64,000 nt of DNA from Pavona decussata. Taxonomy: Eukaryota. The stretch spans positions 2,046,001 to 2,110,000 of the forward strand of contig CDRNST010000091.1 of NCBI GenBank assembly GCA_977016875.1, read 5' to 3'. A program made the translations under genes and the position numbers. A model generated the notes under the pieces. The model was given only the letters and a program-made list of their open reading frames with translations, did no database searches and was not told the DNA's origin. Below, piece by piece: positions 36,556-64,000 of the stretch (its first letter is position 1; each line of letters begins with the position of its first letter).

Positions 36556-39500
36556 ATGGCTTCGCAGAAGATGAAAGAGGAATTGGCGCGGCAGTCCGGC
36601 TTCGAGGATATATCTTTTGCTACAAGAAGCTATCGCCCAGAATATGCTTCGACACCAGACATACGAGGGACTTTTAGACGTAAGTGTATTCATTCATAAG
36701 TGAGCAAGTGATACGCTACCAAGTGAACATATACGTTTCTGATCGTCCTTTTCGATTCCCTTAGCAGCGCAAAGATGGATTCGAACTTCTGAGATCGAAC
36801 CTACACTGCGAGCGAAGCTTGCGTTTACATCAGGTACAAGTATTTTTTAGCGATTTACCAGAGGACTGGTTAACTGTAGGAATGTTGATGTTTCGTTAAA
36901 TTACATGCAAATTGTAGAAATGTGAGGCTTCAATCGACTATAATAACCTCCGGAAATGTCGTTCGCATTGGATTCATTGCAATCAATGAAGCGCTTTTAC
37001 AATCTGTTTTCCGATTTATCTTATAAGATCCTTGCCGGTTTTTTTAGCCTTCTTATAAGAGAATCCTGTTCGGGTCATGTTTAGTTGCATTAATAGCTGT
37101 TTATGTTTAAATATAAGCTTACTACTTTTATTCGCGTATTTTTGTGTGCCAGGGGGTAAAGACCGCCAGGGCCGAAGTATCTTAACTATACCAGCTGGAA
37201 AGACCGAAGATTTGAGCGTGGATCAACTTGGAGATACACTTGTCTATTTAACCCAGATTCCAAGGTACAATATACTTCATTTTTAATTTTACTCCATAAT
37301 ACTTCAATGATTAATCGATTCTTCGAAATCTGTTATTTAATGCAGCAGGCTAAATTCTTTACGCTCCAGAGGTTTCAATGCTGTGACAGTTTTGCGTCTT
37401 CTTTCGAGAGTAAGGCAAACAATCTCACAGAAGTGAACCAACATATCCTACTCCGAACCTTTCTAGACACCCAACAAAGCGTGTAATATTAAACACGCAA
37501 GGATAACTTTCAAATTTACATATAATTCTGACAGATTGAAATTTGGGACAATTTTTTTATTATTGATTAACAATATCGGCGCGAATTCTTTTGTCCGAGA
37601 ACACATTCGCTCTTTTCTTGATTTGTAAACTAAACGCGGTGACGTTTCGGCTGGTGCCTACAACAACAGTTTTAATTTATTTGGGATTAAATGCGAAGAT
37701 TTTAAAATTATTCCCAAAACATATCGGATTGAAAAACAAGTTTTGATCGTCGTAAATTGACAACGTTATCTGCTACCTTGTCTGGAATGTACTCGACGTC
37801 ATGAAATAACTATCGCTATCAACCCGGCTTATTTACCTATGGTTACGTTATCAGTGAGTAATGTCTAAAACGTGTTTTATCAAGCGTTGGGCACAAACAT
37901 TACGTCTCTGTTTGCGAGGGGTCTAGTCGTGATATGAGCCTTTAGTGAATATTTAATACCTCTTTAATGAAATTAACATTTAATTTATCTTCCCAAATCA
38001 GTGATGTTGATTTCATTACAAATTTTTAGAATGTTCCATCCGCACGCCATTTTTAATTGAAACGCCAATGATCCGAGCCCCAGGGGGGGGGGGGGTACTC
38101 CCTTATATGGGCTATATAGGTATGTGCGGCGCCAAAGGGTATGGTTTTTCAGCCGTTTTGGTCATAAATAGGGTATCGATTTTAGCCATTTTGCCGCCAT
38201 TTTGGTAATAAATAGGGTATCGAGTTTTGCACTCTAGTCTTGAATTCGTTTTTTTAGAAGCTACTTCTTCATCATGATGTTTACGGCAACTGTGTACGTG
38301 CTGCAACGGCTTGTCACGCCTTTAACATTGGTCTGGACTAGGGAAATAATTATAAGGCAGGTCTGAAACAGGGAATTGATTTAAGGGTCAGGTCATAAAT
38401 AGGGTAGGAAAAATAGCAGATTTTGGTCATAAATAGGGTAAAGGTTTTGGGAAGCGCGCCGCACACCCCTATCCAATTTTTTTGGGAGTAACCCCCCCCC
38501 CCCCCCCCCCCCCGGGATCCGAGCCATACAGCCGGAACTCAAAACATGTTTTTGCAGACATAACAACCTGAAAGTGAATATGTTATGAATTAATTTATGA
38601 TATTTTAGTTGAAGATTTGAATATGTGAAAGCCTTTAATAGCGAGGTACATTGTATTAAAAATCAAAGGATAGTAAACTTTAGCATTAATTTGCAAAGAA
38701 AGCCTGAAAAAAAAAATCAGGCAAAAATTAACAGGACTTGAGCCAGTGACTGTCTCCAGCGAGAATACTAGTAATTAGTGGTACTGTAGTAGTAATAGTT
38801 ACTGTAGTAGCAGCAGCAAGCAGCAGCAGCAGTAGTAGTATATATTATATAAATATTATGTCTCATAAATGCAATGATACTGTTAAGATGTTTGGTAAAT
38901 AAATAGCTAAAAAAGCCCCAGTAATTTGCACCCGAACTGATGATCAGCTACTCAGAGTTTCAAAATGACTAATTCAACAAGTGAGGAGAATTTCTTTTAA
39001 TTAACAATATTATAAACTGTACATGTAGTTCAGGCATGGCAAGCTAGTCTCTTGTTGTGAAGGAGAGCTTCTCCAAAACTTAACGACAGCTCTATGTCCT
39101 GGGTACATGTTTTTATGCAAACTTCACAATATTTGTCAAAAAAGAGCGAAAAGAAAAAAAAAAAAAAAAAACTGACCAAGTGAAGACTCAGGACACAGCA
39201 GAAGAGTTTACTAGTAAACTATTGGATCAAAAGTTTTTGTGTTAATTTGTTCTGGCTAGTAAGGGCTATCAAGATCTGTTTTGCACAAGTCATCCGCACA
39301 TTTCAGGTGTCAGACGTGTAAATTGTCACTTTTGTATTAAAAAGAAAAAAATGAATATGAATATTTGAAACATAATTATATTTGAAATGTGAAGAATGGA
39401 AGAAAGATCTTTCCTCTCAGTTATTTACGGAACTTAAGCAGTTGGGATTCTTGTCACAACTGCTTAAGTTGTGTAAATAACTGCAAAGGTCTTTCTTCTA

Positions 39501-42500
39501 TTTAATTTTTAAATAAGCAAAATGCTACTGCTTATTTGTTCAACTCAAGTAAAAGTAAATCATTCTCTTAAGCGACATCAACTTTCACTTTCATCCTTTC
39601 TTTGTCATGGACCTCCACTTTGGCAGAAAATTTAGTGTTTAACCCATATGAGCCTTACAGCTGTCGTTTGCATGTTTAGTAAATGGGCTGCTGTGAAAAT
39701 TTGGATAAATATTTATACTCATAACAGCTTGAGTTTGGGTACACACATGTGTGAGCAAGAGGCATTGTTACCTATGGATCATGCAGGGTTCAGCTTCTGG
39801 GACGCTTCAGTTGATTTGTTTACATTTAAATGGATCAACTGCTTGTTTAGCTGTTGTGAAAATTCATGTTGGAAAATCTTTTGATGGGACTAGCCTGACC
39901 AATGTAAAATATCAGTTCAGCTTATCGCTGTTACTCTGTCATTACTATGTTTACTTAAAAAATGGTTCTCATGTTAACACCTTTCTCAAATAAATGCCTC
40001 CCTCAATATTCCCTAAAGAAATAAATAAAGAGCTTGGCCAAAACCTATGCTAAATGGAATGTTGGCCATGAAATACAAATTGCCGCCAAATTAGCTCAAA
40101 TTTGGCATGCAGACTTATTTTTTGATCTTGATACTGATAGTGTAACCCTCTGTGACTTTGTCCTAAAAGTTAAATCAGTGAAGCGATTGAGGCATTAATA
40201 ATTTCTTCTGTTCTGTTCGAACTGAAACAAAGGAATCAGCCAAGCATTTGGTTCAGTTTGCTAGACTAATTTTGAATAGTCACATGCTAATTTTTGGAAT
40301 TTTAGTCTTACTATAAAAAAAAATTAATTTTCATTTATTTATTTATTTATTTACACTGCCACCTCATACGTAAGATTACAGTAGTTACAATGTGAGTTGA
40401 ACAAGAAACTGTTTCTACAGGCTAAACTAGAAATTATTTAATTTGGAGCAATTTGAATTTTTTGAGGCCATTAGAATAGTTGTCAACCAAGTTGTTTAAA
40501 TGCCCCTGGCACTTGATAGGGGGCCGATTTATTTCCTGTTCCTCAAAGATAGTCACGTCAGTGAACTTAATAAATATAAAGCTGTTGAAATACATTTGAT
40601 ATTGGAGATCTTAGCTAGCTCAGATGTCTGTATGTACATGTTTCATTTTCAAATTTAAAACTGTTGTATTTAGAATCAATTCATGTAAAAGGCCCGAACT
40701 ATAAATATAATGGAGTAGGCATTCTCAGGGCAGGAATGTGGCCTTGTCATGGTCAGATGCCTCTTTTAAATAAACATTTCCCTGATTATTTACACCCCAG
40801 GCGTTTGCTTGAATGAGTCTTAATTTTGTCCTCCTTCAAGAGGAACGGTTCGTGCTCACCACAAGTATGACAGTCTCATGCGGAACCCCCCTAGTACCTG
40901 AATTTTTGCACGTGGTATTCAATTTAGTCAGAGAACATCTCTCTGTATTTTTTCCATTGGTTTATGCTTAATGCTTAGTTTCTGAGAAAAATGAGGCAAA
41001 AATATGGAGTGAGGGAAAAAAAGTGGAGAAAGAAGTGGAACAATAAAATTATTTACAGATGCTTCGAAGCAAAAATAAAAACCAGCACAATGATCCTTGA
41101 TCTATTTAAAATATTGCTTTTAATAATACTATAGGAAGGAGAGTGAGATATGGTTTCTGCTTGTAACTGAAATTTTTTTATTCATGTTACGTTTAATAGT
41201 GTTTAAGAAACTCCACATCGTTTAACACGTATATATAACAATGAAGTTTCTATCTTATGATTGTTCAATGGCAGCTCAGCTCAGATCTAGAAATTAAGTA
41301 AACGTTGTTAGCAATAATTACCGGTATTACAGTGTATAAATTATGTAGACCTGGAAACATAGAGGGCCTATGTTCAATGAAAAAGGGGAGATTTGTGATT
41401 TTTATTACAGGTATGACCAAATTCTGGGAAAGAAATGAGAATGAGTTTCTTGAATCAACTGTCTTAATATGCCATATGCCACAAATGACGGCAATCCAAA
41501 GGGAGAAAAAAAAAAACAGAAAAAAACCCCTTAACATCAAATATTTTCAGATTTTTTACATTCTTCAGATTGCCTCATTTTTGGTATGTGGCCTTAGGCA
41601 GTTAGACAGTTCATTCAAGAAACTTACATCCATTTCACCCCAGAATTTGGTCCTATTTTAAATACAAACCAACAATCAACCTAAAATTTGACAATCAGCC
41701 CTTTATTATTTTTGGTTTTGTACGCATAAGTGTGGATTTCAAATGTACTCACCATTCCTCCAAAGTTATCCACATGAGAGAGAGCAAAGAGGCATGCCCT
41801 TCTTGGAAAGTTACTGTTTATTGATGGTAACAGTGTTTATGAATAAAGATTTGTTCGTCCGTTGGCCCATTCATTGGTTCATCCATCGGTCCATCTGTCC
41901 ATCAGTTGGTCCATCCATCCGTTGGTCTGTCCATCCATCTATCTATTCCCCAGCTCCTCAATTGCACGTTCCTTCAGGGTACAAAATACAACCAACCCAA
42001 AGTGAAGGATTGTTAAATGTCCTGAAATGTTTTTTTTTAGATCTGTTTAAATGCAGACAATCCTGAGATCTATGGACAGTTAAATAGTTTTTTCATCTTA
42101 CGTTTTAGGGACCAAACAAGAAGCCAGATATACACTGTGATAATTGATTTACGTGGTTCTTCCTGGAAATCTGCTAAGCCTCTGCTCAGGACATTACAGG
42201 TACATCAGTGGCCTATGACTGTGGTATAAGTTTTAGGAATTAATGAAATGAGTTGTTAGCTCATTAGATGCATATGCGTATGCCTTATTTTCTTGTGCTT
42301 GTTTCACATGTGGGAATGTGCTTATCACACAAGTGGGAACCAGGCTTTAGGGTTGCATTGTTTAGCTGTTTTTAACCCTGTGGCCTACTAACCTTCCTGG
42401 GAACAGTATTGATGCTTCAATGTACATCTAGAAGCTTGTTGTGCAATCAGTTGTGATCCCCACTTAACTCTCCCAATAGTTTTGAGCTTGTATTAGCCTA

Positions 42501-45500
42501 CTATAGGTAATCAACAGTACTGCTAGGTTACTTAAATATAATTAAACATCTTTTAATTTTTTGTTTGTAGGACACTGTGCCTGATAGAGTACATGATGTG
42601 TATATTATAAAGCCAGATGCATTTTGGGAAAAGAGACGCACCGGAACTGGACTCAAGAAAGAACAATCCAGTGTTGTTTTTGAGGTGAATAATGCAAGGT
42701 TTTAGTCAGAGTTAACCAAACTGGGAGGCTACATGTATGTGAAGAAGAATCAGTATTGGAATTTAACAGGATATGAATTAAGGTTTTCTTGTGACCCACC
42801 TCGTGAGCAACTAGCTTCCTCACACAAACACCCTAACAAAATGCCATTTGTATTTCTCAGTTAAACTTAAGTTTTGTACAGTGTAATTGAAAGTTTCCCT
42901 AAGCAGTGACTTCTGTAAGTGACCATGGATGACCCCTTTAGGCCAAACCTTCATATTTACCAAAGTCTAATCCTGTTTCTCAAATCTGAGGTTTTGATGG
43001 AATGTGTCCGAATGACCAAAAACAGCCATCAATTTTGATTAATTTGCATTGCACGGAGTGATTGAGGGTGGTTTTTAAGGTCGTTCCTTTTGATTTTGTA
43101 TTGTAGACAACACTATTGTCATCAACTAGTAAACTTCACCAGTTTGCTGAAGACAGTCAACTCACTCAGGAACTTGGTGGCACATTGCCATATGACCATC
43201 ACAGATGGATTGACACCAGATTGGTGAGTGACATAGTTATATCCATGTGTTTAAATGTATGCTTGCCCTGAGAACGACCACAGCTGCGTCTCATGGTTTT
43301 AAATCTGATAGAACACTCCTGTTCATTTTTTGAACATTACTTAAACCAACACGTACAACATGTAACACACTCAAAGTAATGACTTTACCTTTTTCTCCTC
43401 CTAACTTGAATATACAATTTAATATGACTAGGGGCAAACTCGAAAACTCACCTGTTTTATTTAACCTGATACACTGTAGGCTCTAACATTTGATAACACA
43501 ATATTGTATTTATTCTTAATTATTACCTTAGGTAGTTATAGTTATTGTTTATGTATCTATGTGTATCTGTGTATTGAGCAAAAATAAATAATGGTAATTG
43601 AACAGAGTGGAGTGCAATTTGGTATGAAATCATACGCGTGATTTCAAAATCGAACGAGCGCGCAGCGCGAGTTTGATTTGAAATCACAAGTATGATTTCA
43701 GACCAAATTTGCACGACACAAAGTTCAATTACCACTTTATTACACCTATTTTGAAATCACAGCGTTTTATTGTCAATATTAATATTGTATTTTTGTTATA
43801 AATATTGCATTTCCATTTTGATGGGCTAAAGAAAGGATGCGATTTAGAGCAAAAAAATGGTGCAATTTGGGAATAAATCGCACTGTTGAGAGCCAATCAG
43901 ATTGCAAGGATCACCAGTGATTTCAAAATGGGTGTAATTGTAATTGTAATTGTTATTTCAATTCTAGGAAATTGATAGGCTGTCAGATGAAGCAAAAATA
44001 AAAATTGTAGTTGTAATTGTTATTTCTATTCTAGGAAATTGATAGGCTGTCAGATGAAGCTGCCTCCTTGAATGAGAAGCTTGATGAACTGGAGCAAGAT
44101 CTTGATACCCACCGTCTAGGGAGCAACCTTGAAGAGACGGACGACCTCATACAACAGCATGAAGCTAAAAGAGCAGTTCTTGATAATGATGCACAGCCAC
44201 TCATCCAGAGAGGGGAACGATTAATAAGCTCTCTAAAAGCAAATGAACCTCCCATTCCACCAAGCCAGAATTTTCCCGGGAGTATGGCATCCCTACCGAG
44301 TCAAGAGCGCCAACAGGTTGAGGGCATTGTTACACTCCTGACACACAGGTGTAATCAGCTGATGGACATGTGGGAAAAGAGATGGAAAGAGTTAATGCAG
44401 TGTATGGATCTTCGACAGTTTGAAGCAGGTTATCAGAAGGTAAGTGTTTTTTCCAAATGCTTTTATTGCTTTTTTTGTTACCTAATAAGATTTTGTTATC
44501 TTGGATTACTGTTTTACTGACAGTGTCATTCATTTGTGCCCTGTTGTTCGAAAGCCGATTAACGCTAATCCCTGATTAAAAATTAACCGAGGTTTTCATC
44601 TCGCTTATTTTAAATGTTTTCAAGAGCTAATTTTAAGCTAATGGTAAAGAAAAGTCTAAGTCAAAAGCAAAGGATAAAAATGTTTTGGAAGAATCTTTAT
44701 TGATGAGTCATTTAACTTGAATCAAAGTTTATGTTAACCCAGGATTAGCTTAACCGGGCTTTGAACAACTGGAGCGGGTTGTTCGAAAGCCGATTAACGC
44801 TAATCTACGATTAAAGTCAATCGAGGTTTTCATCTCGCTCTTTAAAGGTGATTTCAAAGCCTAATTTCAAGTCAAAGGTAAAGAACAGTGTAACTCAAAA
44901 CTGAGGGCCAACACTCTTTTGGAAGAATCTTTATTAATTAGTTATTAAACTCGAATCAAAGTTCACGTTAATCCAGGATTAGCTTAATCGGGCTTCGAAC
45001 AACTGGGCCCAGGGCCCTGGAAATCAGTGCCAATGATGTTTCAGTTTGGTTGTTTTTGTGGATTATCAAAATTATTATTTGTGGTTGCAGGTGATTGACT
45101 GGGTTCTCGGGCCAGGAGAACGTTATTTATCCACATCGAAAGACATCGGAGACTCTGTCATAACCTGTGAGGTTTTAAGGAAAGAACATGAAGAATTTGA
45201 GATGAATGCAAGGGTAAGAAGATATTCATTTTATAATCCTTGATCACAAAACACGTGGTTAGTGATGTTACTCACAGTTTTCATTAGAGGCAGTGTCACC
45301 TATTTGTGATGTTACTTTGAACGGCCAAAAAACACATTTGCATTGACAATATCGTTAAAATAATGCTTCAGTTTTGTTAACGGTAACTCCAATACTACAC
45401 AGAAACTAGTGTCAGTTATTTTTGGCCGCGGATGGCCAAGATTGAAATGGATTGAAACTTGAAAAAATTGGCGAATTTTTTCTTAGTTCTTCCAGCGTAA

Positions 45501-48500
45501 TTAGAGAAATCGCTAAAAAAAAACTGATTATACTTTGTTCTTCTCAGGAGAAATCACTTAATATTTTATTTTCGGTGCTCTAAGAGCAATTTGATGTTAG
45601 CGGAAAGGTACCTTGTCAAATATTCACCTTCGACCAAAACACAGAGATATCTCCGTGACAGTGCTCGGTGTGACGATATCACAGCTTGAAAACATTAGCC
45701 TGCGTAGCTGGCGGTTTCGCTGGGGTTTGGTGGCCCTTGGCGGAGCTACGAAAACGAGAAAACGTCTGCATTCTTCTGGCGGTTTCGCTGTTTGTTTTCT
45801 CGTTTTCGTTGTTCTGCTGCAGACCACCAAACCCCAACGAAATCGCCAGCTGCGGAGGCTAATATTCATTTTCAGACCTGACTTCTAGACTCCGTACCTA
45901 TTTTCAGACTTTCAGACCAAAACGGCTAAAAAAACCATACCCGTAAGCGACCACCCAAAAATACCAAGATTTAGTGGTCGCTTACAAGAGGTGGTCGCTT
46001 ACGCCAGCGACACATCTGGCGATTTTATACGCCGATCGCGGCAAATTTGATCGCCAGCGAAAATTGCAAGCGATTTTTGCCACCGATTGATGCGGAGACA
46101 CCTGGCGATTTTTTTCGCCCAGCGCGGCGATGTGGCAGTTTTGAAAACTCATGAGATAAAATCGCCCAACATGATGGGTTGGCTTTACTGGCGCTTCGCA
46201 GCAATTACGTAGTAAATGCCGGCGAATTTAATCGCCGATATCTGACATTCCAGATAGTGTTGGGTTGTTACTTAAAGTTCCTCGTAATCTCTGAGTAGCG
46301 TAGTGCGTACAGCGAGCATGGAGATCAAACCATACATGTATGTGTCAAGTGGTAGCTTACAAGAGGTTAAAGACAATGAAAAATTATAATGCCGTCACAT
46401 CGAAAAGTGGTCGCGGTCGCTTATGAGAGGTTCCAACTATAGAACTTTGACTGGGAAAAATTTGGTGTTTTGGATAGGTGGTCGGTTATGGGATGTGGTC
46501 GCTTACGAGAGGTGGTCGCTCATGGAGGTTCGACTGTATAGCTAATATAGGCTATAAGCTTAGGGCGTTGTTTCCAGCTGGTTTAACCTGTTTTTACCCC
46601 TTTTTTATTTTAGGACGTTATAAACCACTTCGCTCAGGTGCGAGAGCTGGCCAAGAAGATGCTCCAAGAGAATCACTACGCGTCAAAAGACATCAAAACC
46701 CAGAAGGAGTTTCTGGACAGAGGTTGTCGGAGCTTTGCCATGCGTATGAACAGGAGGAGAGATATTATTCTGACGTCACTGAAGTTCCATAAGAGTGCTG
46801 GAGACGTAAGTGAAGTTTTTGTTGAATTTTTGATAGTTTGTACACGCGCTAGGGAGTTAGTGAGTTTTGACCCATGGCACGTGACACGTTCTCCTCCAAT
46901 CGGAAAACGTATTTGAGTTGGAAGGTATAACGAAAGGGCTCACCTGAATGATCAGGCTCTGATACTCCTGGTTTCAAACCTTTTACTAATTAGGGACTAT
47001 TCTCACAGAGACGATGATAACTTGTTGATGATGTTGATGATGATGATGATGATGATTATGATAACATTGGTTAAGTGTCAAAGTATTTACACTGCAGTGC
47101 TAATTTTGGACGCTATAAATGACTAAACCAAATACGCAAATTGAACATAACATTTGTTAAAAATCCTATCTGGCGGGAGGCAGACCAGTTGGCCATTTAC
47201 AGAGCATGAACACATGAACACATGATCACCAATCTCACGTTTGCCCTTTGCGTAAACGCGATTCTAAAGCTCACCATTAAGACCGATTCTCGTCGTGGTT
47301 TCAAAGCATTGACGATGTTAACTTGTTTTTGTTTTTCAGTGCTCTGTTCACTTAGACGACTTGTTTGAACTGTTGTGTTCTGATTCTGTTCTCTTGTACG
47401 ACTATGAAACTGCAGAGACCATGCTCAGAACACTGGAGGAGAAGGCTGAAGGTAAGAGACGACAAAGGGTCTCGAACTTGGTTCTATTTTTCGCAGGAAC
47501 AACGGTTGACAAGCTTTACGGCCTTTGTAGTTGTTAAAGAGTGTACCTTTAAGCAAATCGTACACCATTTTCACTGTCATTGCAACCACTCACTGTCTTT
47601 GCTGAATTAAGTTATGGGAGGAGAGATTTTGCAAAGATAGAGGGTCGTAAGACAGAGAAAGGGCAGGTAGGACGTGTCGCCAAAGGGGAGTTGGGTGGGT
47701 AAAAAGAACATTCTGAAACCCCAGAACGGCGTAACTTGGCGAGAAGGACCAAAGAGCAGGAATTGTTTCTTTAAATGGGCAGATGAAGTCCCAGGAGACA
47801 CGGGTGGCATTGACTTTAAAACACCGAGGCGTTACAAACATGCTAGCGTTGCGCGCAGGCTAGTTTCGTGGTTATTTAGCCAGTGAGAATAGCGCTCAAG
47901 TGAACAAACGCATTTTATTTTCAGCCGTAGCTGAGTCGTCCGAGGAAACTTTGCGAGACGCGCTGGCCGCGCAGGAACTGATGACCAGTCAGGTTGTTGA
48001 CATGCGCGGCGATGATGTCACACCGGACTACAATAGGGGTATTGCGCATGTGCGGCTGACGCTGGACGAACTCAGAGAGCGGAAGCTGCGTACGGACGAG
48101 CTGTGCGATGTGCGCAGAATCAAACTACAGCAACTGCTGCAGCTCAGACAAAGCGAACGAGACGCAGAACAGGTAAAAACAGGAATAAAATGCGATCAGG
48201 CTCTCGCCAAACGCGAAACCAATTTTAGCGAGTAACTTTAATACATAAGAGTAAGTAGAGAGCGCTGTGAAAACTTCTTGACAAAAAAAAGACAAAATAA
48301 AAAGAGGTAAAACATAGTGCAAATGTAACGGAGAAAGGGAAAAAATAATTTAACTAATACTGATCCCTTCACTTACAAAGATGGTTAAATTATCGCTTTT
48401 TGTGAGGGAGATTTTTTGTGGAAAAAGAAAACGAAAAAAATTATAAACATGAACACACACATAGACACAGGACAAAACTGTAATAAGGGTGATAAGAGCA

Positions 48501-51073
48501 AAATAATTATACTAAGTCTATCGTAGTATCGAGAGAAGTATAATTTCAAAAAGAGCCTTCTAAAATAATTTATTGTGAGGCTTTGTTCGAATAGATAGAG
48601 GAACGTCATTGCGTTCGACGTAGAAAGAACGCACTCCTAATACAGATTGGAGNNNNNNNNNNNNNNNNNNNNNNNNNNNNNNNNNNNNNNNNNNNNNNNN
48701 NNNNNNNNNNNNNNNNNNNNNNNNNNNNNNNNNNNNNNNNNNNNNNNNNNNNNNNNNNNNNNNNNNNNNNNNNNNNNNNNNNNNNNNTTTGGGACGCGTA
48801 TCTGGCATCCCCCGCACATTTTGCACGGGCAGATGACATCATCACCAACTTGGCAAAGGAGAGAGAGCCTGGGATCGAGATCATCGAATGCACTCTTTAA
48901 TCTTTGACTATTACTGGTTCTAGAAATACCGTCCAAGCATGAAAAACAGCTTGTCTTTTGTTTTATGTTTTCAGGCCACAGCATGGATAAGCCAGCTGCG
49001 AGACGCTACAGAACACAACCTGGGGGATGTGGGACGGAACTCCGAGGACGTCGAGGCACTTCAACAAGAACACGAGAAACTGGAGGGCACTGCTAGGGTA
49101 AGAGGGGTGGGGAGGGTGGGGCACTCAGCGGTGTTCTATAATAAGCCATTTTCGAGTTGCTTTGAACCTCATTTTGAAAGGGAGTCTAAGTGCAATATTT
49201 TTATTGTGAAAATTAGTTTCATTCCTATGTAAAGAAAACTGTTTTTCATATAAAGACCTTTGCGCTAAGCCTCGCTTTCATAATGAGGTTCACAGCAACT
49301 CGCAAATGACCTGTTCTCTGATTTATCACTACTTGTAGCAAGCCAGCCTACAATCCTTTGCCATCCGACCATTTAATTAAATAAAATATAAACGTGAGTC
49401 CGAAGAACTGCAGCTCACAAATCTAAGATTAAGATTACAAGGATGCGAGATTTAACAGAGCAATATTTCGTTGTTTATTTCAACAACATCATCAGGCAAT
49501 GATCGCAAATAGAAAATGCTACAAGACTACACTGGTGATATAAAATTGCAATCATGTCATAACAATTGTAAGTCCCTTGACGCCTCCAGTCCCGAGTTCA
49601 GATTGGGCGTACGATGTTGAATCATTAACGCCTCTTTTAAAAGTAGCACATTCCAATGGTTCGCTTGACCAATTACAGGGGTATTATCTTGTACTGTTTG
49701 TTTATTGAGACCTACAATGTTGGTCTCAAATTCTCTTTGAATTGGGATTTGTTGCAGAGCACGTATGATTATGGAAGACAGTTTCTTCAAGCTTCGTTAG
49801 TTCTTCGCCGGACATGTCGCTACGAATTGTCACCGAACTACGAAATGGAAGAAAAGTTGAATAGCGCATGGGGCGACTTCTCGTCCGCCATGGCGGAGCG
49901 AGGGGCAAGGTTATCTGTGGCGCTTATGTTCCATCGGAGTGCAGAGAAGGTAGGAGCTATCAATGTCCATTTTCTCCTTACAACGTGAGTAGCGTGTCAA
50001 GCCGACTGGTGGTGAGAATTAGGAGAACGATCATCGATTATTTTCGGATTTGAGTTTGCATGTTATGATGACTCTTTTGCTTTACATTAATTATTTTTAC
50101 ATCACATCTTCACGTTCGCCCCAACAAGTCGGTAAAACCAAATTTACGTGGTCACTCCTGACGCAGTACCATGGTTTCTTTAAAAACTGGCTCCCACATC
50201 AAAATAGTTTCGTTTTCGAAAGAAAATTAAATGTTGGTCCATGTAAAAAGTCGTACATAGAACGATACTGTTAACGCAAAATTTACACGCAAATACCACA
50301 GAATGCTTTCAGCCAAAATGTAGTTTAACTTAAAAGGGACTGTGTGAGCTGGGGCACATGCGCAGTAAAATCCGGTTGAGATTAATTTGCATACAACTCG
50401 TTGCGGGATTTTAGCATTTCCGCAATTGCAAAAGCTTTCAAAAATATCGCAACAAATAGCTTCTGTAATTACTGAAGAACGTTTTTGAATAAATTCAGCT
50501 AACTTTCCGAAGATGAACGCGATTCAAACAGATGAAAACAACTTCCTGAACTCTCCGACGGTATCTGAAAAAGTTGGGCCAACGATTGCTTGAAGTTCTT
50601 CTCATCAACGCACGCATGCGCCTGGGTTGAGATAGTCCCTTTAATGGGACTGGAGATCACAAAAATTACTTGCCTAAAAATTATCTTCTTTAACTTCATT
50701 CATGTCTTTGTTGCTTCTTCACATTCAGTTGACCCAACGAATAGAGGAGCTTAGAGCTGCATACATGCGCGAGGACCTCCCAGAAGACCTCACGGCCGTG
50801 GAACAAGAGATCAGCCGACACTCTGACACCAGACATGCGATCGACAAAGAATACGCCGAGACGGTTGCCATGGCGAAAGCTTTGATTGACAGGATGCAAT
50901 TGCCTTCTCTCTATGACGAGGATGGAGAGCCGAATCGCCCGCCTCATCTCTTAGAAGAAAGTCTGATGGATTTGGAGGAAAGAAAGACAGCTTGGGAGAG
51001 AGTGTGGAAGGACAGAGACGAGAGACTTCATCACTGGTTGAAACTTGGAGACTACGAACAACAAATGAACGAG
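36556..51073 (+). CDS. SESTD1: SEC14 domain and spectrin repeat-containing protein 1-like portion (exons 1-14) of a longer gene
   Basis: Exons 36556-36679, 36765-36833, 37153-37264, 42109-42199, 42571-42684, 43107-43223, 44035-44439, 45091-45213, 46614-46805, 47340-47451, 47925-48172, 48975-49097, 49758-49949, 50729-51073, all GT-AG and in frame. Peptides KLAFTSGGKDRQGRSILTIP, IIKPDAFWEK, QLTQELGGTLPYDH, VIDWVLGPGE, DVRRIKLQQLLQL and [12 protein letters not shown] match human SESTD1 as I recall it ([79 protein letters not shown]). Confidence 0.92.
38079..38516. mobile_element. MITE with poly-G/poly-C termini
   Basis: CCCAG(n)TACTCCC…GGGAGTAAC(n)GGG flanked by the direct repeat ATCCGAGC (extendable to GATCCGAGCC). 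Confidence 0.85.
43590..43938. mobile_element. Second copy of the DIRS-like small element, in intron 6
   Basis: Near-identical to 23896-24218. Confidence 0.8.
44538..45012. mobile_element. Head-to-tail dimer of a ~240-bp MITE; third copy at ~51872-52116
   Basis: GTTGTTCGAAAGCCGATTAACGCTAATC at 44543 and 44778; each unit ends GGATTAGCTTAA.CGGGCTT.GAACAACTGG. Confidence 0.85.
45694..45862. mobile_element. Short palindromic MITE with TAG…CTA ends
   Basis: ATTAGCCTGCGTAGCTGGCGGTTTCG / CGAAATCGCCAGCTGCGGAGGCTAAT. Confidence 0.75.
45943..46539. mobile_element. Tc1/mariner-type MITE remnant with a nested insertion (~46003-46320)
   Basis: Repeated GTGGTCGCTTA motifs; right end GAGGTTCGACTG-TA. Confidence 0.6.
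48653..48787. other. Assembly gap
   Basis: Run of N. Confidence 1.
49375..49740 (-). mobile_element. Penelope-like element 3' remnant, antisense in intron 12
   Basis: ORF 49557..49790(-) ends WNVLLLKEALMIQHRTPNLNSGLEASRDLQLL*, typical of a Penelope GIY-YIG C-terminus; downstream CTGATGA-T-GTTGTT gaaata AACAAC-GAAA hammerhead-like core at ~49459-49498. Confidence 0.72.
50330..50644. mobile_element. MITE with TTAA target site (Kolobok-like)
   Basis: TTAAAAGGGACTGTGT… / …AGATAGTCCCTTTAA. Confidence 0.7.
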
Positions 51074-52155
51074 GTAAACATCTACCAAACTAAGGTTTTG
51101 CATTATACATGAAAATATTCCCAAACATTCCCAGTAATGATTGGAAACTCTCTCCCAGAACTACCAGAAAACGTCTTTGAAGATTCTGGAAAGCTCCTTG
51201 TTCTTGGTCTCGTTTAATTTCTCGATAATCTCCTAATAGAAGGTTCAATATTTAACAGAAGCTAAATTGTAAATTATAGATCTACGAAACATATTGGGAA
51301 AATCTCACTAGAAATAACTACTTATCCACAGAAAGTAGATGAAAAAAAAAAACACCCAATGGCCTCAGTAACTTGGGTAATCGGGGTTTTCCAGATATAG
51401 GCCCCGGAATGTGTGTATAGATGTAAGGACCAGCGATCATATAGTTATTACGGATTACTTATGCGGGTTTAGTGACCTGAAAATTTGCCGTCGATCTGTT
51501 GTACTCTTGGAAACTTCTTGAATCCATTACTGTTCCAGGCGGTCAGAAAGTGGAGAGCTGTAGAAAGTTATTGCGACGGAGCGAGGAGACTGGAGAGAGA
51601 AGGCGAGAGTCCTTTCGCCCCCTCTCCCCAGTCTCTTCTCGTTTTTCGTGCTCCTCGCCCTTGTTGTTAGCACGCATCGCAATTTTCAGTTCGCGCCGCT
51701 CGCCACTTGTTGGATATGCCTATTAGCTAACGAGGCGCTACGCGCTACGCGCCTTGTTGGCTGTCTGTCATCTCATATCCAACGCGCGCTCGGGATCGTG
51801 GAATAATTGTTTTATCAAAAACAATCAAGAAATATTGCTAGGTCTTGCTGATTTCGCTTCGCAAGAACAACCAGGGCCCAGTTCTTCAAGACCCGATTAA
51901 CGCTAATCCACAATTAAAAGTTAACCGAGGTTTTCACCTGGCTCATTGAAAATGTTTTTAAAAGCTAATTTTAAGCTAATAATAAAGAAAAGTCTACGTC
52001 AAAACTGAGGAACAAAAATCTTTTTGAATTGTCTTAATTGGTTAGTAATTAAACTCGAATCAAAGTTCACGCTAAACCAAGATTACCTTCATCGGGATTT
52101 GAACAACTAGGCCCAGAAGAACAATTATAATGGTCGCTATTTCTCAAGTATGTTA

Positions 52156-52645
52156 TAAAGCCTGGTTTACACGTACGACGCAAGCATAAGTATAAGCACA
52201 AGCATAAGCACAAGAAACCTACGTGTAAACCGGTGCGACGCAAGCATAAGCGCCTTGTGCTTGCTCTTGTACTTATGCTTGCGTCGTCCCGGTTTACAAG
52301 TACGACGCAACAACGCAAGCATAAGCCAAGCACAAGAGAATGGAACGATTTCCATTCTCTTGTGCTTGTGCTTATGCTTGCGTCGTTGCGTCGTACGTGT
52401 AAACCGGGACGACGCAAGCATAAGCATAAGCGCAAGGAAAGGAAACTGAAAAACAGTGACAAGTTGTCAGCGTACAATCTAGTTACTCATGCGTTGCCAT
52501 TTTCCGCCATGTTGGAATCAAATCTCGGCTGCTTCTGCGCTTGCATATGTCACGTTATGCTTATGCTTATCGCACGTGTAAACATCCTTGTGCTTGTGCT
52601 TGTGCTTATTCTTATGCTTGCGTCGTACGTGTAAACCAGGCTTTA
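52156..52645. mobile_element. MITE with internal AAGCA(T/C) repeats, nested with another MITE inside an older element (~51722-52720)
   Basis: Perfect TIR TAAAGCCTGGTTTACACGTACGACGCAAGCATAAG / CTTATGCTTGCGTCGTACGTGTAAACCAGGCTTTA. Confidence 0.9.
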
Positions 52646-52870
52646 TGGCTCATATACCATGGCCGCTAAGCCAGTCAAATACCCGGAGTTGCATTATACA
52701 ATGATCCAGTTATTTAATAATTGACATTATAGTGCATTCACAAGCTGAAAAGTTGAAACGGCATAATCCTAGGTTTGAGTCAATGAGTCTTTCAAAGTCT
52801 TATAATCTGTCTTTCCGTAAAGTGACCACATTCACTGAAAACCTTGTAACGTCTCTTTCATTGTTCAAAG

Positions 52871-55800
52871 CTTCTCCAGTGGGTAAAAGACAGATCGAAC
52901 GAGACAGAGGAGAACAAGAACGAGATTGGTGAAAACCTGGCCGAGGCCGAGGCGCTGTCTTCCGACCTGCAGGAACTGGAAACGAGGCTCAAGGTTTGTT
53001 TTTGTGTTCTAGTCAATTGTTACTGGATTATGATAGGATTACATTTTGATATACAGTGTACTTAATAGCAATTTGGTACTTAGGGGTGGGTTTATCAGTA
53101 CGTGAGGTTAAAATTTTCAATTTTGTTACTTTGAGTTTAACGATGTGTTTTTTGTCATGTAAATGGGAAGTAAGTTGTCCCCAATCAGTTTATAGGCCAT
53201 TTCCGAGTTGCTGTGAACCTCATTATGAAAGCGAGGCTAAGTGCAAAAACTTTTCATTTCAGTTTTGTTTGCATATGAATGAAAACTAATTTTCATAATA
53301 AAAACTTTGCACTTGGCCTCGCTTTCATAATGAGGTTCACATCAACTCGGAAATGGCCTATTCTGTAAGATTGATCGAACGACACGTTAATAAAGTTATC
53401 ATTATTATTGTTATTATTATTATTTTGTATTAAGTCACAATGTTTTAAGGGTTTAACTAATGAAAGGCAACGCTTGTGATAGCTAAAATTTTATCACCGA
53501 GAACATATTTTTTTTTTCATTTGGTAAGAAGTTTACCATTTTTCTTGCTAAAACCGTTCTTAAAGAACGACTTATGCCCTTTCTTAGACGAGAAATACCC
53601 CATGAACTGCAGATAAATATATAAACTGAATTTTCCAGAAAAGACGAACTTTCTTGGATTTTAAACGATTTTTCAAGGAGAAAAAATTAAGAAGAAGGTG
53701 ACCATTGTTATGAATCAGCAATCGACTTCGATCCTGGGGCCCGTTTTTCGAAAGTCCCGGTAACTTACCAGGCCCGATAAGTGACTGATAAACGAAGTCA
53801 ATTTTTGTTAGCTTTGAATACTGTTTTCTATGAAAACATTTGCCAAGTAGCTTTGAGTATACTAAATTTTAAAATCTTATAATTCTATGAAAACATTGGC
53901 CAAGTACTATGTCTGTAATCACTGTGTAATCGGCGAAAAAACTTCATATTTTCATATTTCATCCATACTAGCGTTTTCGTATCGTTTTCACTTATCCATA
54001 CTAAAACGCTCGAAAACGATAAAAAACGCCTGGGATCTGGTATAACGCAAGTGCCAACTTCTAAAGACCATCCGCCATCTTGGATGGATGCTCCGATTTG
54101 GACTGGGACCGATGGCATGTGACGCTTTTTGCGTCACCGTTTTCACCTGTCCACACTAGTAGTGGAAATGCACTCAGCTACCGAAAACTAGTTTACAGGC
54201 ATTCCACTCAGAAATAACGGGAAACTAATAATAATCAAATCGAACATAACGTGTTAAAAATCGCAACTGGCTGGAGGCAAACCAGCTGGCTATTTACAAG
54301 CCTGGCCAAGGCGGGACTTGAACCCACGACCCCAGCGCCCTAACCGCTGGGCCACGCCGCCTCTGAAATCATTTTATTATCACAGTATTTAGTTAGAAAC
54401 ACAAGGAAAAAGAAAAAAATAATACAAAATACGAGTTAGCTGCTGCTTATGTGGAGATTAAGGAAGGAAACATTGAGCAATCATTTAACTTAAACTAATA
54501 AAATAGAAAATAACTAGTGTAAAACTGGAGGCAAAATACAACAAAATATCTGAAAACAACTTCAATAAAATTATTTAATTATACACTATACTAACCAGGC
54601 AATTCTATTTCTGTTCTTATCGTAAAACGTGAGGTATGTACCGTGACCTTAATCCACGCAAGTTAAACGTCCGTTTAAATTTAGCGCTAACCTTTTTTTT
54701 AGGGATTGAAATCGAGAAGGAAGAAAGGTGGATTTTGGGTTTATTATCTTACAAGCCACCTTTGTCGATTCAAGGTTATTGACTCAACAACGGGGAGGGG
54801 CACGAATGAAAATGATAAGACCATTGATAATGTCAACGCGTGCCAAAATAAAAAAGTTCTATTATTTTCCCGAAAAATATCCACTTTTCAGATAAATGGA
54901 TTTCATTTATTGATTGCACTTAAAATTTATCGTCATACTCGACCTAGGGTTACTTTGTATAGCAATAGACAATTTGACTTCACCATAGAAAAGTATTGTT
55001 CGATAGCTTTTCAATTGACCCATTTGAGGACACTGGAATTGGAAAGTTCTGCTCAGTAGCTTTTATTTGAATAGTCACGCTTTAGGAATTCATCCGCAGT
55101 TACAAAATGTAGAACCTTGCACAGCATAACAAACAGCAACACAAGATCTGCTCATTGGCGTACATTTGAAAGGTCATACTCACACACTCATAAGACAGAA
55201 CTACCCTGTACAGCATAATAAACAAGACCAAAGGAAAGTACTGCTCAATAACCTCTATTCTATTTTCTCAGAAATCAGAATCGCATTTTGCAGCCTAAAA
55301 AACACTACTTACGAGATGATTTTACCACTCACTTGCTTTCATTTGAATGGTCGCACTTTAGAAAGATTTCATCCACAGACTCAAAACTAGGACCACTGTG
55401 ATTTGAACGGTGACGTTTCTAGAATTTCATACAAAGTCGAGTTGAGTTGACTGTTAACAAAGCTAGAACCGTCTCTTTTATATACAGGCTGCAAGAATGT
55501 AGATAGCCAGGCTATTCAATTTCATCTATCAAGGAACTGAAAAGTTAAGTACACATTGCATTCCTCGGACATTGGTTGTACATCAACAAATGAGATAAAA
55601 GGTTACGATCCGCCAGACGAGAATCTTCCTTCAGGTGGAGCACATTTGATTTAACCACGAAAGCAGTCCTGCGTAGGGTGGGGCTAGCGAAAAATTGTAA
55701 ACAACCAAATTTCGAAAGAAATAGAAACGATTGTTTTCCAGAGCTAGTCGGAATATTTCTGCGTTGCTTTGAGCCTCTTGACAACGCTAAGTGAAAAAAA

Positions 55801-58800: not shown

Positions 58801-59513
58801 ATTAATTATCAATGTCGGGTGGATGAAACAAATTTCAAGCATCAGTATTTTTTTTTTCAATGTATGTGAGTTAGTGAAATAATCTACTCATCCTTACAGA
58901 TTTGGTAATGAAAAGTGTGTAATAACAGTAGAAAGTTATAAATACAAACTCTCCATATTTGTTTTATTAATAGTAATAACAATAAATATTTAACTTAGTT
59001 AATGACTTGGAGCAAGTTTGCTCCCTGGTGGCGTGGCGGAGTGTGGCGTTAGCGTTTATTGGCGTATAGTTTGGGCACTGGTGGCACTTTAGCCGAGGAT
59101 ATCACGTCATACCAATTGTTGTTAATAAAACAAGATCGTGTGTTATTTGCTTCTTTGACTAGTGAATCTCGAATTTTTTTTTTTACTTTTTGAAAAAAAT
59201 GGGTCAGTCGGGCGATAGGAAACGAAACATTTTAATGGGATGGCCTAAATAAAATTTAAAATTTTTTAAAAGTTTTAAGTGCAGGTCAAATTTATAGCTT
59301 ATTATTGACTTATCTTTTTAGGACAAAGAGAAAGAAGTTGCTGAGCTGATTCAGGTGATTAAGTCGCTAACCCCGACTGAAGAAGACAGAGCGAGACCTT
59401 ATGGAAGGATGGCAGATTCATTAGAAGAGGCCTGGAATGACCTCAATGTACAGTTAGAGGGCAGGAGAATACTATTGGACACTTCTTTGGCCTTTCATCA
59501 AAGTGTCGAGCAG
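52871..59513 (+). CDS. Continuation of the same gene (exons 15-16): spectrin-like repeat resembling the CCDC141 N-terminus; gene continues beyond the window
   Basis: Exons 52871-52993 (LLQWVKDRSNETEENKNEIGENLAEAEALSSDLQELETRLK) and 59322-59513 (DKEKEVAELIQ…PYGRMADSLEEAWNDLNVQLEGRRILLDTSLAFHQSVEQ); both phase 0, no stop, ending in a donor (CAG|GTACG). Confidence 0.82.
53192..53361. mobile_element. Palindromic MITE; degenerate relative at ~49141-49314
   Basis: ATAGGCCATTTCCGAGTTG / CAACTCGGAAATGGCCTAT. Confidence 0.8.
55800..57500 (+). promoter_or_regulatory. Putative internal promoter / alternative first exon(s) in intron 15
   Basis: CpG-rich stretch without obvious repeat structure, strong orphan donors GAG|GTGAGT (56131) and TTG|GTGAGT (56612), then an abrupt shift to CpG-poor DNA. 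Confidence 0.4.
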
Positions 59514-60028
59514 GTACGTTTAAATGATCATTTAAAACTAGTCTTTGGAAGACTGTTCAGTAACTATAAACATTGATAAGAATTACATGTTGGGAAGGAG
59601 GATACTGTTTCGGACTTTTGTAACCTTTCATCAAAGTGTTGAGGAGCTTTGACTTATAATGCTACATTTATAAATTAGCCTGGTGGTGGTTAATCAGTGA
59701 AAACTAACATTGGAAGACTGTTCAATAAACTTTAAAAATTGATTAGAATTAAGGAAGGAGAATTTTGTTGAGCAGGTTTGAGTTACACATGTATACAATG
59801 GAACTTCAATTTAACAAACTTTCAAATAACAAAGTCCTAAACAAGCAACAAACAATAAACAAACAACATTCTCCAGTCCGGCCTTTTAAATTTACGGAAC
59901 AGAACCTCCATATCACAAGCCAATTTCCCTTAGTCCCTTGACACTTTGTTAAATCAAGGCTCCACTGTAAATGTTATTCAGATTAGCCTGGGAAGGTTGA
60001 TCAGTGAAAATCTATTTTGGGAGACCAC

Positions 60029-60213
60029 TGTGTAATTCCAGAAAATATCCATGCTCCCCCCACAGAAGGTTTTTTGTTTTGCACCTCCCCCCTCCCCCCA
60101 AGAAATTCCAGTTTTGCTTCATACTTTGCTTCTAAAATTTTGGACCCCCCTCCCCCTAGTAATTTCCAATGACCTTCCTTGGGGTGGGTATAGATTTTTT
60201 CAGGAACTGCACA
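60029..60213. mobile_element. MITE
   Basis: TIRs TGTGTAATTCCAGAAAATATCCAT / ATAGATTTTTTCAGGAACTGCACA. Confidence 0.7.
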
Positions 60214-63039: not shown

Positions 63040-63427
63040 CAGTCGAACCTCGATTATCCGGACCTCGATTATCCAGACTTTTTTCTCTGGTCCCAATTTT
63101 TTCATGAATATTAATTAGTTGTAATCTTGAAAACTAAAAGTCGCAAGAAGCCCAATAATCCTTTCAAAAGTCTGTTGAAACAGCGTATTATCCTGGGTAC
63201 TTTTCAAAATTTGCAAGTGCAACGAGACAATACCTGAACTTAAAGTTTTTATTTGTAAATACATTACAGGCTGTGTAGATTTCACAATTAAAATGATGTT
63301 TTCTTTGCTGTACCCTTTTGTTTACATTTCTATCTCATTAATATTCATATTTTCGATTATCTGGACTCTCGATTATCCAGACTTTTTACCGAGGTCCCGA
63401 CGAGTCCAGATAATCGAGGTTCGACTG
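63040..63427. mobile_element. Tc1/mariner (pogo-like) MITE
   Basis: TA-CAGTCGAACCTCGATTATC…GATAATCGAGGTTCGACTG. Confidence 0.85.
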
Positions 63428-64000
63428 TGCTGTAGATAGTAAGTTCACAAGAGTTATGTTATAGAATGCCACATCCTGAATGCCACCATGCATTTATGAT
63501 ATTTAGGGTTTAAACAATCCTGTATATACCAGGTGTTAGTGTATTTTGGGGTATACACTACATGTAAATGAATATATTTTTTTGGCATCATCACAGAGAC
63601 GACAACATACATGAAGTTGTTATAATACCAGTATCAGTTCTGAATTTGGTGTTCTGTGAAATGCTCCAACCGGCTAGTAAATATGCTCTGAAATAATGTC
63701 AACCTGTTCAATTTAAAACTATATTTTTGTAGGTGTAAATCTCTTTGGTGTTTTCATGTATTTGTTACAAGTTCAATGACTTATACTTGTGAATGAAAGT
63801 GATGTTTGGAAGTATACAATAATTATTGTTTTTGTTATGTTGTTTTTTGTACTGTGGTCCTCTGCACAGTCTAAAATTTTAACAGCATATTGAATTTTAA
63901 TATTTGTTTAAAAATTCCTCAAATTTCATTGATCATGCATGTTATGTTAAATATGATTCGATAAAATGCTAATATTTGGTGAAAAAGCAATGTTTGAAAT

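Follow-up and report, generated by a model that had tools for sequence, protein, structure and literature searches.

SESTD1-like, CCDC141-like and titin/obscurin-like parts follow each other in a giant connectitin-type gene of the coral Pavona decussata

Vertebrate SESTD1 is a protein of about 700 amino acids, ending after its last spectrin repeat. In a stretch of 64,000 nucleotides from the coral Pavona decussata (assembly GCA_977016875.1, contig CDRNST010000091.1; the window below) a SESTD1-like frame passes the end of its exon 14, which we take to correspond approximately to that C-terminus, and the question arises whether one gene really continues there into a CCDC141-like sequence and beyond. 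A sequence-only reading of the locus had suggested that it does. It was confirmed that the SESTD1-like part is spliced on in frame and that the 5' end of this gene is real and transcribed; the CCDC141-like and the titin/obscurin-like parts follow on the same strand, very probably in the same frame. The stretch very probably corresponds to the 5'-most third of the spectrin rod of a single giant coral gene. In this reading the gene is of the connectitin type and a paralogue of Trio/Kalirin, and the SESTD1, CCDC141 and titin/connectin parts, three neighbouring genes in bilaterians, still form one transcription unit in it. Such a gene was described for cnidarians under the name 'connectitin' by Hanashima et al. 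2025, thus it is real but of a kind already known, and the suspicion of the earlier reading that the concept was not new was justified by this publication (PMC12198301).

The chain of 16 exons and 894 codons that had been claimed was reproduced exactly by splice-site and frame computation: all exons are bordered by canonical AG/GT sites and together make 2682 nt with no stop codon (Table 1), and a downstream phase-0 chain extends the open frame over 30 exons and 2098 codons. The 69-nt exon at 43284-43352 is doubtful, since its splice sites are weak and no orthologue of it lies between exons 5 and 7 in a contig of a related cnidarian (L024), where exon 5 directly precedes the orthologue of exon 7. 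It is probably spurious; no stop arises whether it is included or left out, and the model of 15 exons and 871 codons is equally open. For exons 1-3 and the putative ATG, support was found neither in the RNA contigs nor in the relatives compared here.

Table 1. Features of the connectitin-type gene in window numbering, and of the separate Trio/Kalirin-type locus on contig C263 in the numbering of that contig
Feature	Position	Strand	Evidence or remark
Putative exon 1 with ATG	36556-36679	+	open frame, GT donor, phase 1 donor; start codon is a prediction
Exon 2, SEC14 region begins, ..GKDRQGRSILTIP..	37153-37264	+	phase-consistent AG/GT
Exon 3, SEC14 region	42109-42199	+	phase-consistent AG/GT
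Exon 4, SEC14 region	42571-42684	+	tblastn orthologue in L024 at 275-388, 37% identity
Exon 5, C-terminal end of SEC14/CRAL-TRIO	43107-43223	+	weak CRAL_TRIO_2; 41% identity in L024
Doubtful 69-nt exon	43284-43352	+	counted in the 16-exon/894-codon model; weak acceptor and donor
Exon 7, encodes a complete spectrin repeat, begins unit 1	44035-44439	+	Pfam Spectrin E 0.0011, Spectrin_7 E 0.0048; best donor score
Exon 8, 123 nt, phase 0-0	45091-45213	+	44% identity in L024, there fused to exon 9
Exon 9, 192 nt, phase 0-0	46614-46805	+	48% identity in L024
Exon 10, first half of SESTD1-type spectrin repeat	47340-47451	+	spliced RNA contig; PF24915 model positions 12-48
Exon 11, second half of SESTD1-type repeat	47925-48172	+	RNA contig; PF24915 39 bits, cut-off 27
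Assembly N gap, intron between exons 11 and 12	48653-48787	.	flanks non-coding; length estimated
Exon 12, 123 nt, phase 0-0	48975-49097	+	RNA contig; L024 orthologue
Exon 13, 192 nt, phase 0-0, STYDYGRQ..	49758-49949	+	RNA contig; 48% identity in L024; single copy in genome
Exon 14, spectrin repeat	50729-51073	+	RNA contig; weak PF24915 match
Phase-0 intron where bilaterian SESTD1 and CCDC141 are split	51074-52870	+	spliced out in X1 and X3 RNA contigs; absent in L024
Exon 15, 123 nt, phase 0-0, LLQWVKD..	52871-52993	+	RNA contig; 68% identity in L025, same boundaries
Exon 16, 192 nt, phase 0-0	59322-59513	+	71% identity over 35 aa in L024; single copy in genome
Start of intron (5.5 kb in all) to next exon	59514-64000	+	next exon at 64991-65344
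C263 Trio/Kalirin-type locus	spectrin 1.08 Mb; RhoGEF 1099917, PH 1102811; RhoGEF 1122095, PH 1123829; FN3 1133297	+	profile matches

At the N-terminus the CRAL_TRIO_2 profile stayed below the cut-off when the exons were searched singly (E 0.065 on exon 5, E 0.0043 on its L024 orthologue), since small exons, four or five in number, divide the SEC14 domain among them and each exon was searched against Pfam by itself; the split domains of this gene were likewise not picked up in genome-wide searches with RhoGEF and CRAL_TRIO_2. The SEC14 region is followed by more than ten spectrin repeats, namely seven three-exon units of about 220 amino acids and one further repeat, all in frame, three exons corresponding to two repeats. 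The repeats contained in single exons match Pfam Spectrin, Spectrin_7, Spectrin_SESTD1 or DUF7799, and the fused exon 8-9 ORF of L024 reached 33.8 bits with Pfam Spectrin.

The read-through past the SESTD1 end was found in RNA. One spliced contig of 12,072 nt from run X3 joins the six exons 10-15 in unbroken blocks (record coordinates 47340-47449, 47923-48169, 48972-49096, 49757-49947, 50727-51071 and 52869-52994), with exon 14 spliced in frame onto exon 15, and the identical 51071/52869 joint is present in run X1, which comes from the same sample. Of the joints for which long cDNA reads had been named as a check, 51073-52871 is seen in the assembled contigs of two runs. The X3 contig reaches 9,795 nt further 3' beyond exon 15 and, by length arithmetic, its 5' end would fall within exon 2; the second X1 record extends 309 nt beyond exon 15, a length that would fit exon 16 and the start of the following exon. 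A transcript of at least 12 kb is represented in this way by assembled contigs of one sample and one study, of which 6 kb were mapped and the other 9.8 kb placed by exon lengths. Because exons 13 and 16 each occur only once in the genome, a retrocopy is not the source of the spliced contig. The contigs of two coral metatranscriptome runs (X4 and X5) were all unspliced and showed 16-26 differences; they stem from a different strain or species, or else represent DNA or pre-mRNA, and were uninformative on splicing.

It might still be supposed that two or three separate genes lie here, the first of them SESTD1-like with its end close to exon 14 and a CCDC141/obscurin-like one starting downstream, and that the joined RNA is a minor read-through or conjoined product. 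In bilaterians the counterparts are indeed separate, internal promoters are in use in Kalirin (PMC12198301), and retention of the intron after exon 14 would bring a stop after 12 codons. We consider this arrangement improbable on several grounds. Exon 14 has no stop codon, and its donor position is conserved and read through in all seven related ORF fragments, short genomic pieces which a whole-library protein search with this exon recovered; in the RNA contigs of the species itself the depth is 0 in the intron immediately past exon 14. In L024 exons 14 and 15 lie within one uninterrupted ORF of 175 amino acids from which the intron is absent, exon 15 being the in-frame continuation of exon 14, as the pairwise alignment with the joined translation of the two exons showed. 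The same contig carries exons 4-19 in the same order, exons 4, 5 and 8-16 being collinear by comparison. Moreover, the periodic unit of 350/123/192 nt crosses the supposed boundary uninterrupted, and the downstream part needs no first exon initiated by an ATG. Internal promoters of the single gene may nevertheless yield shorter products.

The two parts were assigned to their families by Pfam markers. The only match above the cut-off for Spectrin_SESTD1 (PF24915) in the 602-Mb genome is the repeat encoded by exons 10-11, and the only one for DUF7799 (PF25075), with 46.9 bits at a cut-off of 27, falls on the exon at 64991-65344, which begins 991 nt past the window end. An atlas cluster of chordate proteins named 'Coiled-coil domain-containing protein 141' carries PF25075, and in L024 the PF24915 (33 bits) and DUF7799 (52.7 bits) matches stand about 7 kb apart. 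The claim of a fused SESTD1-CCDC141 gene is upheld by this succession of a SESTD1-family repeat and a CCDC141-family repeat in the same gene, the CCDC141 signature being located in the exon after exon 16, beyond exons 15-16. The narrower claim of the earlier reading, a resemblance of exons 15-16 to the N-terminus of human CCDC141, did not gain support in that form. On their own, exons 15 and 16 gave no Pfam match, and in the atlas exon 16 alone led to generic Spectrin clusters only. The DUF7799 exon returned 32 fragments in a word-index search and weak, generic spectrin matches in the PDB; a literature search for DUF7799/PF25075 found nothing.

Beyond the window the same strand continues as expected for the 5' end of a giant gene, up to DH and SH3 domains, Ig domains and kinases. 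RhoGEF fragments were detected at 83.4 kb (E 0.005) and 147.4 kb (E 0.0035) of the extended window, both at about 18 bits, a score kept under the cut-off by the division of the domain among several exons. A PH domain (SOS1_NGEF_PH, 33.5 bits, C91:2198895) and an SH3 domain (SH3_2, 24.1 bits) scored above their cut-offs; no PH match accompanied the first DH. The 81 Ig hits, located throughout on the + strand, span 86 to 186 kb, and a single exon of 1493 amino acids holds 14 I-set domains. Three kinase domains lie at 170.9-175.3, 186.0-186.8 and 193.3-198.4 kb; the second one, the only kinase tested, reached 251 bits with Pkinase and is MLCK/twitchin/titin-like, and its nearest relatives among solved structures are MYLK4, twitchin, DAPK and titin. 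Of the domains for which the downstream sequence was to be inspected, spectrin, Ig and kinase were all present, but FN3 was seen neither on C91 among the best 150 of 832 genome candidates nor in the ORFs scanned. The domain succession on one strand suggests that all these parts are connected as one unit up to the kinases, presumably by a single full-length transcript.

A domain order of this kind also invites the view that the gene is a plain coral orthologue of Trio/Kalirin, unrelated to SESTD1, CCDC141 and titin, since Trio and Kalirin likewise have SEC14, spectrin repeats, DH-PH, SH3, Ig and kinase domains. The atlas feature hits of the DUF7799 exon include Kalirin-like clusters, and on related fragments a precomputed PF23323 (Spectrin_6) stands beside PF25075; the genome-wide profile search with PF23323 gave no match. 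However, this explanation has very little probability in our judgement. A canonical array of spectrin, DH-PH, DH-PH and FN3 is found at a separate locus, C263, which is the best match in the genome for the Trio DH-PH and scores much more strongly (RhoGEF 59 bits, PH 56 and 45, compared with about 18 for RhoGEF and 33 for one PH in the present gene), and this locus gave only sub-threshold matches with PF24915 and PF25075. The 81 Ig hits and three kinases are unlike Trio as well, and the published SEC14 and kinase trees split the two lineages (PMC12198301). Finally, an assembly artefact, in which the N gap of estimated length within the stretch or a misjoin brought unrelated exons together, can practically be dismissed: in the RNA, exon 12 follows exon 11 without any additional nucleotides, thus the gap is intronic and no exon was lost in it, and the exon order is repeated in an independent contig of another species.

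With its parts read in order, the single connectitin-type gene very probably has the following layout. It opens with a probable SEC14 domain spread across exons 2-5, followed by a rod of about 15 spectrin repeats built from the recurring unit of approximately 350/123/192 nt, nearly all in phase 0, and the end point of vertebrate SESTD1 is here an ordinary phase-0 intron within the third unit. The frame would then lead through a linker to DH, SH3, about 80 Ig domains, two SH3s, DH-PH and three Ser/Thr kinase domains, and the gene ends about 134 kb past the window. Judging from Trio/Kalirin, obscurin and titin, the encoded protein probably acts as an elastic scaffold that is anchored to membrane or cytoskeleton and signals through its Rho-GEF and kinase domains, and its likeliest site might be the myoepithelial cells.

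A tentative idea, which we regard as possible rather than probable, is that the bilaterian SESTD1/CCDC141 split maps to this one ordinary ancestral phase-0 intron (51074-52870) inside a strictly periodic unit. Two genes could have arisen by the gain of a terminator and a promoter in that intron, and no exon would have been rearranged. If this is true, exon 14 should have its homologue in the last coding exon of vertebrate SESTD1, and exon 15 in the exon with which the coding sequence of CCDC141 begins. A breakpoint at the level of exons is not given in the published description (PMC12198301).

The earlier reading had placed its giant gene in an animal group usually said to lack canonical titin, and the host is in fact a coral. 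Cnidarians were for a long time described as having no titin. Whether the animal muscle machinery has a single origin is a question on which a gene combining SESTD1-, CCDC141- and titin/obscurin-like parts has a bearing, a point made in 2025 (PMC12198301). Our additions are modest: genome and RNA confirmation of the spliced joined form in a coral, a clean exon map with its repeating unit of 350/123/192 nt, and a candidate fission intron. The locus is also a useful check for annotation, in which a gene of this kind can easily end up as several separate models.

Compared with the known systems, the coral gene shares with vertebrate SESTD1 a probable SEC14-type N-terminus followed by spectrin repeats and a PF24915 match above the cut-off, but its frame has no stop and is spliced on to a minimum of ten further spectrin repeats and the remainder of a giant protein. 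As in vertebrate CCDC141 (CAMDI), there is a spectrin rod with DUF7799, placed between the SESTD1-like part, which it adjoins on the 3' side, and the Ig domains; in contrast to CCDC141, this part is no separate gene, has no start of its own, and DH and SH3 stand between the rod and the Ig array. Long I-set arrays, an obscurin-like SH3-DH-PH and the kinase mentioned above are common to this gene and titin/connectin, obscurin and twitchin, whereas the probable SEC14 and spectrin head and a size far smaller than that of vertebrate titin set it apart; FN3 domains and Ig/FN3 super-repeats were not seen in the genome candidates and ORFs scanned. Trio/Kalirin, presumed to be the ancestral paralogue, has the same ground plan, from which the coral gene deviates by the number of its Ig domains and kinases and by its first DH.

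The closest system is connectitin itself, which was described in cnidarians and placozoans from database proteins and TSA with SMART domains, Acropora millepora being among the material (Hanashima et al. 2025, J Mol Evol; PMC12198301). In it, SESTD1-, CCDC141- and titin-like parts are connected to one gene, and the genome has a Trio/Kalirin paralogue besides; in corals, SEC14 and more than ten spectrin repeats are followed by RhoGEF, PH and SH3 domains in a central region, many Ig domains, and three kinases at the C-terminus (PMC12198301). The spectrin count, the RhoGEF/PH/SH3 domains, the Ig array, the three kinases and the separate Trio/Kalirin locus were all found here; to the published description the present analysis adds the exon structure, spliced RNA across the SESTD1/CCDC141 position, the family Pfam markers, and the intron-less exon 14-15 of a relative.

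Exon 14, with which the SESTD1-like part ends, is spliced onward to exon 15, as the sequence-only reading had proposed, since the joint is present in RNA contigs of two runs of the same sample (X3 and X1). RNA contigs of four runs were aligned to 47300-53290, the spliced support being that of one sample, assembled contigs and 6 kb compared. The single 12,072-nt contig of X3 keeps its coordinates unbroken over six exon blocks, which sum to 1144 nt, i.e. the predicted 1143 nt and one ambiguous base. It extends past these blocks by 1,133 nt on the 5' and 9,795 nt on the 3' side; judged by the summed exon lengths, the 9.8-kb 3' stretch should reach roughly to where the 1493-aa Ig exon ends. The flanks of the N gap between exons 11 and 12 are non-coding in appearance; because the X3 contig is unbroken and of the predicted length, this gap hides no exon and exon 14 is joined to exon 15. 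Furthermore, an 844-nt contig of X1 carries the identical joint (51071|52869), followed by 309 nt more. Exons 13 and 16 have one copy each in the genome, thus the spliced contigs represent RNA and not a retrocopy.

A short, SESTD1-only form left no sign in the X1 and X3 contigs over 47300-53290, since the depth directly 3' of exon 14 is zero in both runs and retention of that intron would yield 12 extra codons and then a stop. Two coral metatranscriptome runs (X4, X5) contain unspliced contigs at 50601-51224 that cover exon 14 together with the intron on either side and show 16-26 differences; these contigs are from another strain or species, or are DNA or pre-mRNA carry-over. Very high summed RNA contig depth with many joints and loose ends was also seen at intronic 48500-48900, 49100-49500, 50300-50700, 51700-52700 and 53100-53290; these stretches probably represent repeats that are transcribed, or pieces of transposons, and do not belong to the gene.

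The window is C91:2046001-2110000 (+) of a 602-Mb assembly, and the animal is a coral, since RNA and DNA runs containing this sequence bear the label "coral metagenome". The exon model was built from plus-strand open frames and splice-site scoring with phase bookkeeping. The 16 exons and 894 codons with zero stops of the earlier reading were regained by joining the exons computationally (2682 nt), with AG/GT at every internal exon boundary. Exons 1-3 are putative exons, placed by frame and phase. Exon 6 is probably spurious because of its poor splice sites and because nothing similar was found in L024, a metagenome-assembly contig of a more distant cnidarian, where exon 5 is directly followed by the exon-7 orthologue; the model lacking it has 871 codons and a frame just as open. 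The start of exon 7 (EIDRLSDEA..) is briefly duplicated at 43968-43994, 67 nt 5' of the true acceptor 44035, and the intron after exon 16 holds an interspersed repeat of about 390 bp (63038-63430) with at least 40 genome copies at 83-94% identity.

Features of the connectitin-type gene and of the Trio/Kalirin-type locus (positions above 64000 continue the same numbering downstream)
Feature	Position	Strand	Remark
Exon 1	36556-36679	+	frame, phase
Exon 2	37153-37264	+	frame, phase
Exon 3	42109-42199	+	frame, phase
Exon 4	42571-42684	+	frame, phase; collinear in L024
Exon 5	43107-43223	+	frame, phase; collinear in L024
Exon 6	43284-43352	+	69 nt; poor splice sites
Exon 7	44035-44439	+	orthologue in L024
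Exon 8	45091-45213	+	collinear in L024
Exon 9	46614-46805	+	collinear in L024
Exon 10	47340-47451	+	RNA, L024
Exon 11	47925-48172	+	RNA, L024
N gap	48653-48787		between donor 48172 and acceptor 48975
Exon 12	48975-49097	+	RNA, L024
Exon 13	49758-49949	+	RNA, L024
Exon 14	50729-51073	+	RNA, L024
Exon 15	52871-52993	+	RNA, L024, L025
Exon 16	59322-59513	+	collinear in L024
X3 contig blocks	47340-47449, 47923-48169, 48972-49096, 49757-49947, 50727-51071, 52869-52994
Rod unit 1			405|123|192 nt
Rod unit 2			112+248|123|192 nt
Rod unit 3			345|123|192 nt
Rod unit 4			354|120|192 nt
Rod unit 5			255|123|171 nt
Rod unit 6			174+180|123|192 nt
Rod unit 7			327|123|192 nt
Rod end after unit 7			final 324-nt exon
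First DH fragments	~80.1-83.6 kb (domain region 79.9-83.6 kb)	+	weak RhoGEF match
SH3+Ig exon	after first DH		I-set 91 bits
1493-aa exon			14 I-set domains
SH3 domains	145.7 and 146.3 kb
Second DH start	147.4 kb
PH of second DH	C91:2198895		over cut-off
Kinase domain 1	170.9-175.3 kb
Kinase domain 2 (middle)	186.0-186.8 kb
Kinase domain 3	193.3-198.4 kb
Spectrin, weak	C263, 1.08 Mb	+
RhoGEF	C263:1099917	+
PH	C263:1102811	+
RhoGEF	C263:1122095	+	59 bits
PH	C263:1123829	+
FN3	C263:1133297	+

The read-through is shared with relatives. A search with exon 14 revealed seven related ORF fragments, all of which read through at the same donor position, and the contigs of two of these seven relatives (L024 and L025) were compared. 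In L024 exons 4, 5 and 8-19 are collinear, and exons 14 and 15 form a single unbroken 175-aa ORF (4836-5360), thus the DNA itself shows coding beyond the SESTD1-like end. Exons 8 and 9 are likewise fused (1959-2267), so that two introns, 8/9 and 14/15, were lost in this relative; its introns are far shorter, exons 4-19 spanning about 11.4 kb versus about 25 kb in this coral. L025 has exon 15 about 440 nt beyond exon 14, at 68% identity and with unchanged AG/GT boundaries.

The two parts carry family-specific markers. Exon 11 matches Pfam Spectrin_SESTD1 (PF24915) with 39 bits (cut-off 27), exons 10 and 11 being the sole over-threshold match genome-wide. The exon following exon 16 (64991-65344, 991 nt past the window) matches DUF7799 (PF25075) with 46.9 bits (cut-off 27), again the sole over-threshold match in the genome. 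DUF7799 is a CCDC141-associated family, since in the ESM atlas the chordate cluster "Coiled-coil domain-containing protein 141" has PF25075 (together with PF25101), which is absent from the common families shown for the SESTD1 and Kalirin clusters in the same listing. Both markers are present in L024, about 7 kb apart. Searched singly, exons 15 and 16 gave no specific family match, and in the ESM atlas exon 16 found only generic spectrin clusters. Human SESTD1 presumably continues for about 40 residues past the motif quoted in the earlier reading and ends near the equivalent of the exon-14 donor.

From exon 7 on, the rod follows a recurring exon unit of about 350 | 123 | 192 nt, in phase 0 nearly throughout. 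Approximately two spectrin repeats are coded per unit, which gives a rod of about 15 repeats. The SESTD1/CCDC141 position is a normal phase-0 intron within the third unit.

Downstream, where 200 kb 3' of the window were examined, the frame stays open across 30 exons and 2098 codons as far as an 833-nt linker exon. Between the first DH and the SH3 at 85.7 kb no PH match was found. Further spectrin repeats, Ig domains (81 hits in a local iterative search, 81/81 on the plus strand, 86.1-185.9 kb) and three kinases follow; no FN3 domain came up in this gene, either within the top 150 of 832 candidate matches genome-wide or in the scanned ORFs. The nearest solved structures to the middle kinase are MYLK4, twitchin, DAPK and titin.

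The gene was also considered as the Trio orthologue, and this was rejected, since the Trio/Kalirin plan was found on another contig of the same genome instead. There, G000:C263:1081554-1133557 (+) holds spectrin, DH-PH, DH-PH and FN3 in this order, all on one strand, with only sub-threshold scores against PF24915 and PF25075; this locus is the probable Trio/Kalirin orthologue. Elsewhere in the genome, a single strand carries upwards of 60 strong FN3 exon matches in about 230 kb (C171:1582000-1810000, minus), and a similar array is located at C206:856000-966000 (+); by their domain matches both are putative giant FN3-array genes.

A connected SESTD1-CCDC141-titin gene was named "connectitin" by Hanashima et al. 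2025 (PMC12198301), who reported it from placozoans and cnidarians, the coral Acropora millepora among them. In their description SEC14 is combined with over 10 spectrin repeats and many Ig domains, RhoGEF, PH and SH3 make up a central region, corals and sea anemones have three kinases, and the gene originated by duplication of Trio/Kalirin; the account was restated in a later paper (PMC12657953). The coral locus agrees with this description (PMC12198301) in its spectrin rod, Ig domains, RhoGEF/PH/SH3 region and three kinases, and probably also in SEC14, for which the CRAL_TRIO_2 score stays below cut-off, thus the joined-gene interpretation is right but not new, as had already been suspected. 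To the published picture are added the exon 14-15 splice proven by RNA, an exon map of the 5' part and rod, family-specific markers for the SESTD1-like and CCDC141-like parts, a relative without the intron between exons 14 and 15, and one intron (51074-52870) as candidate site of the later gene fission.
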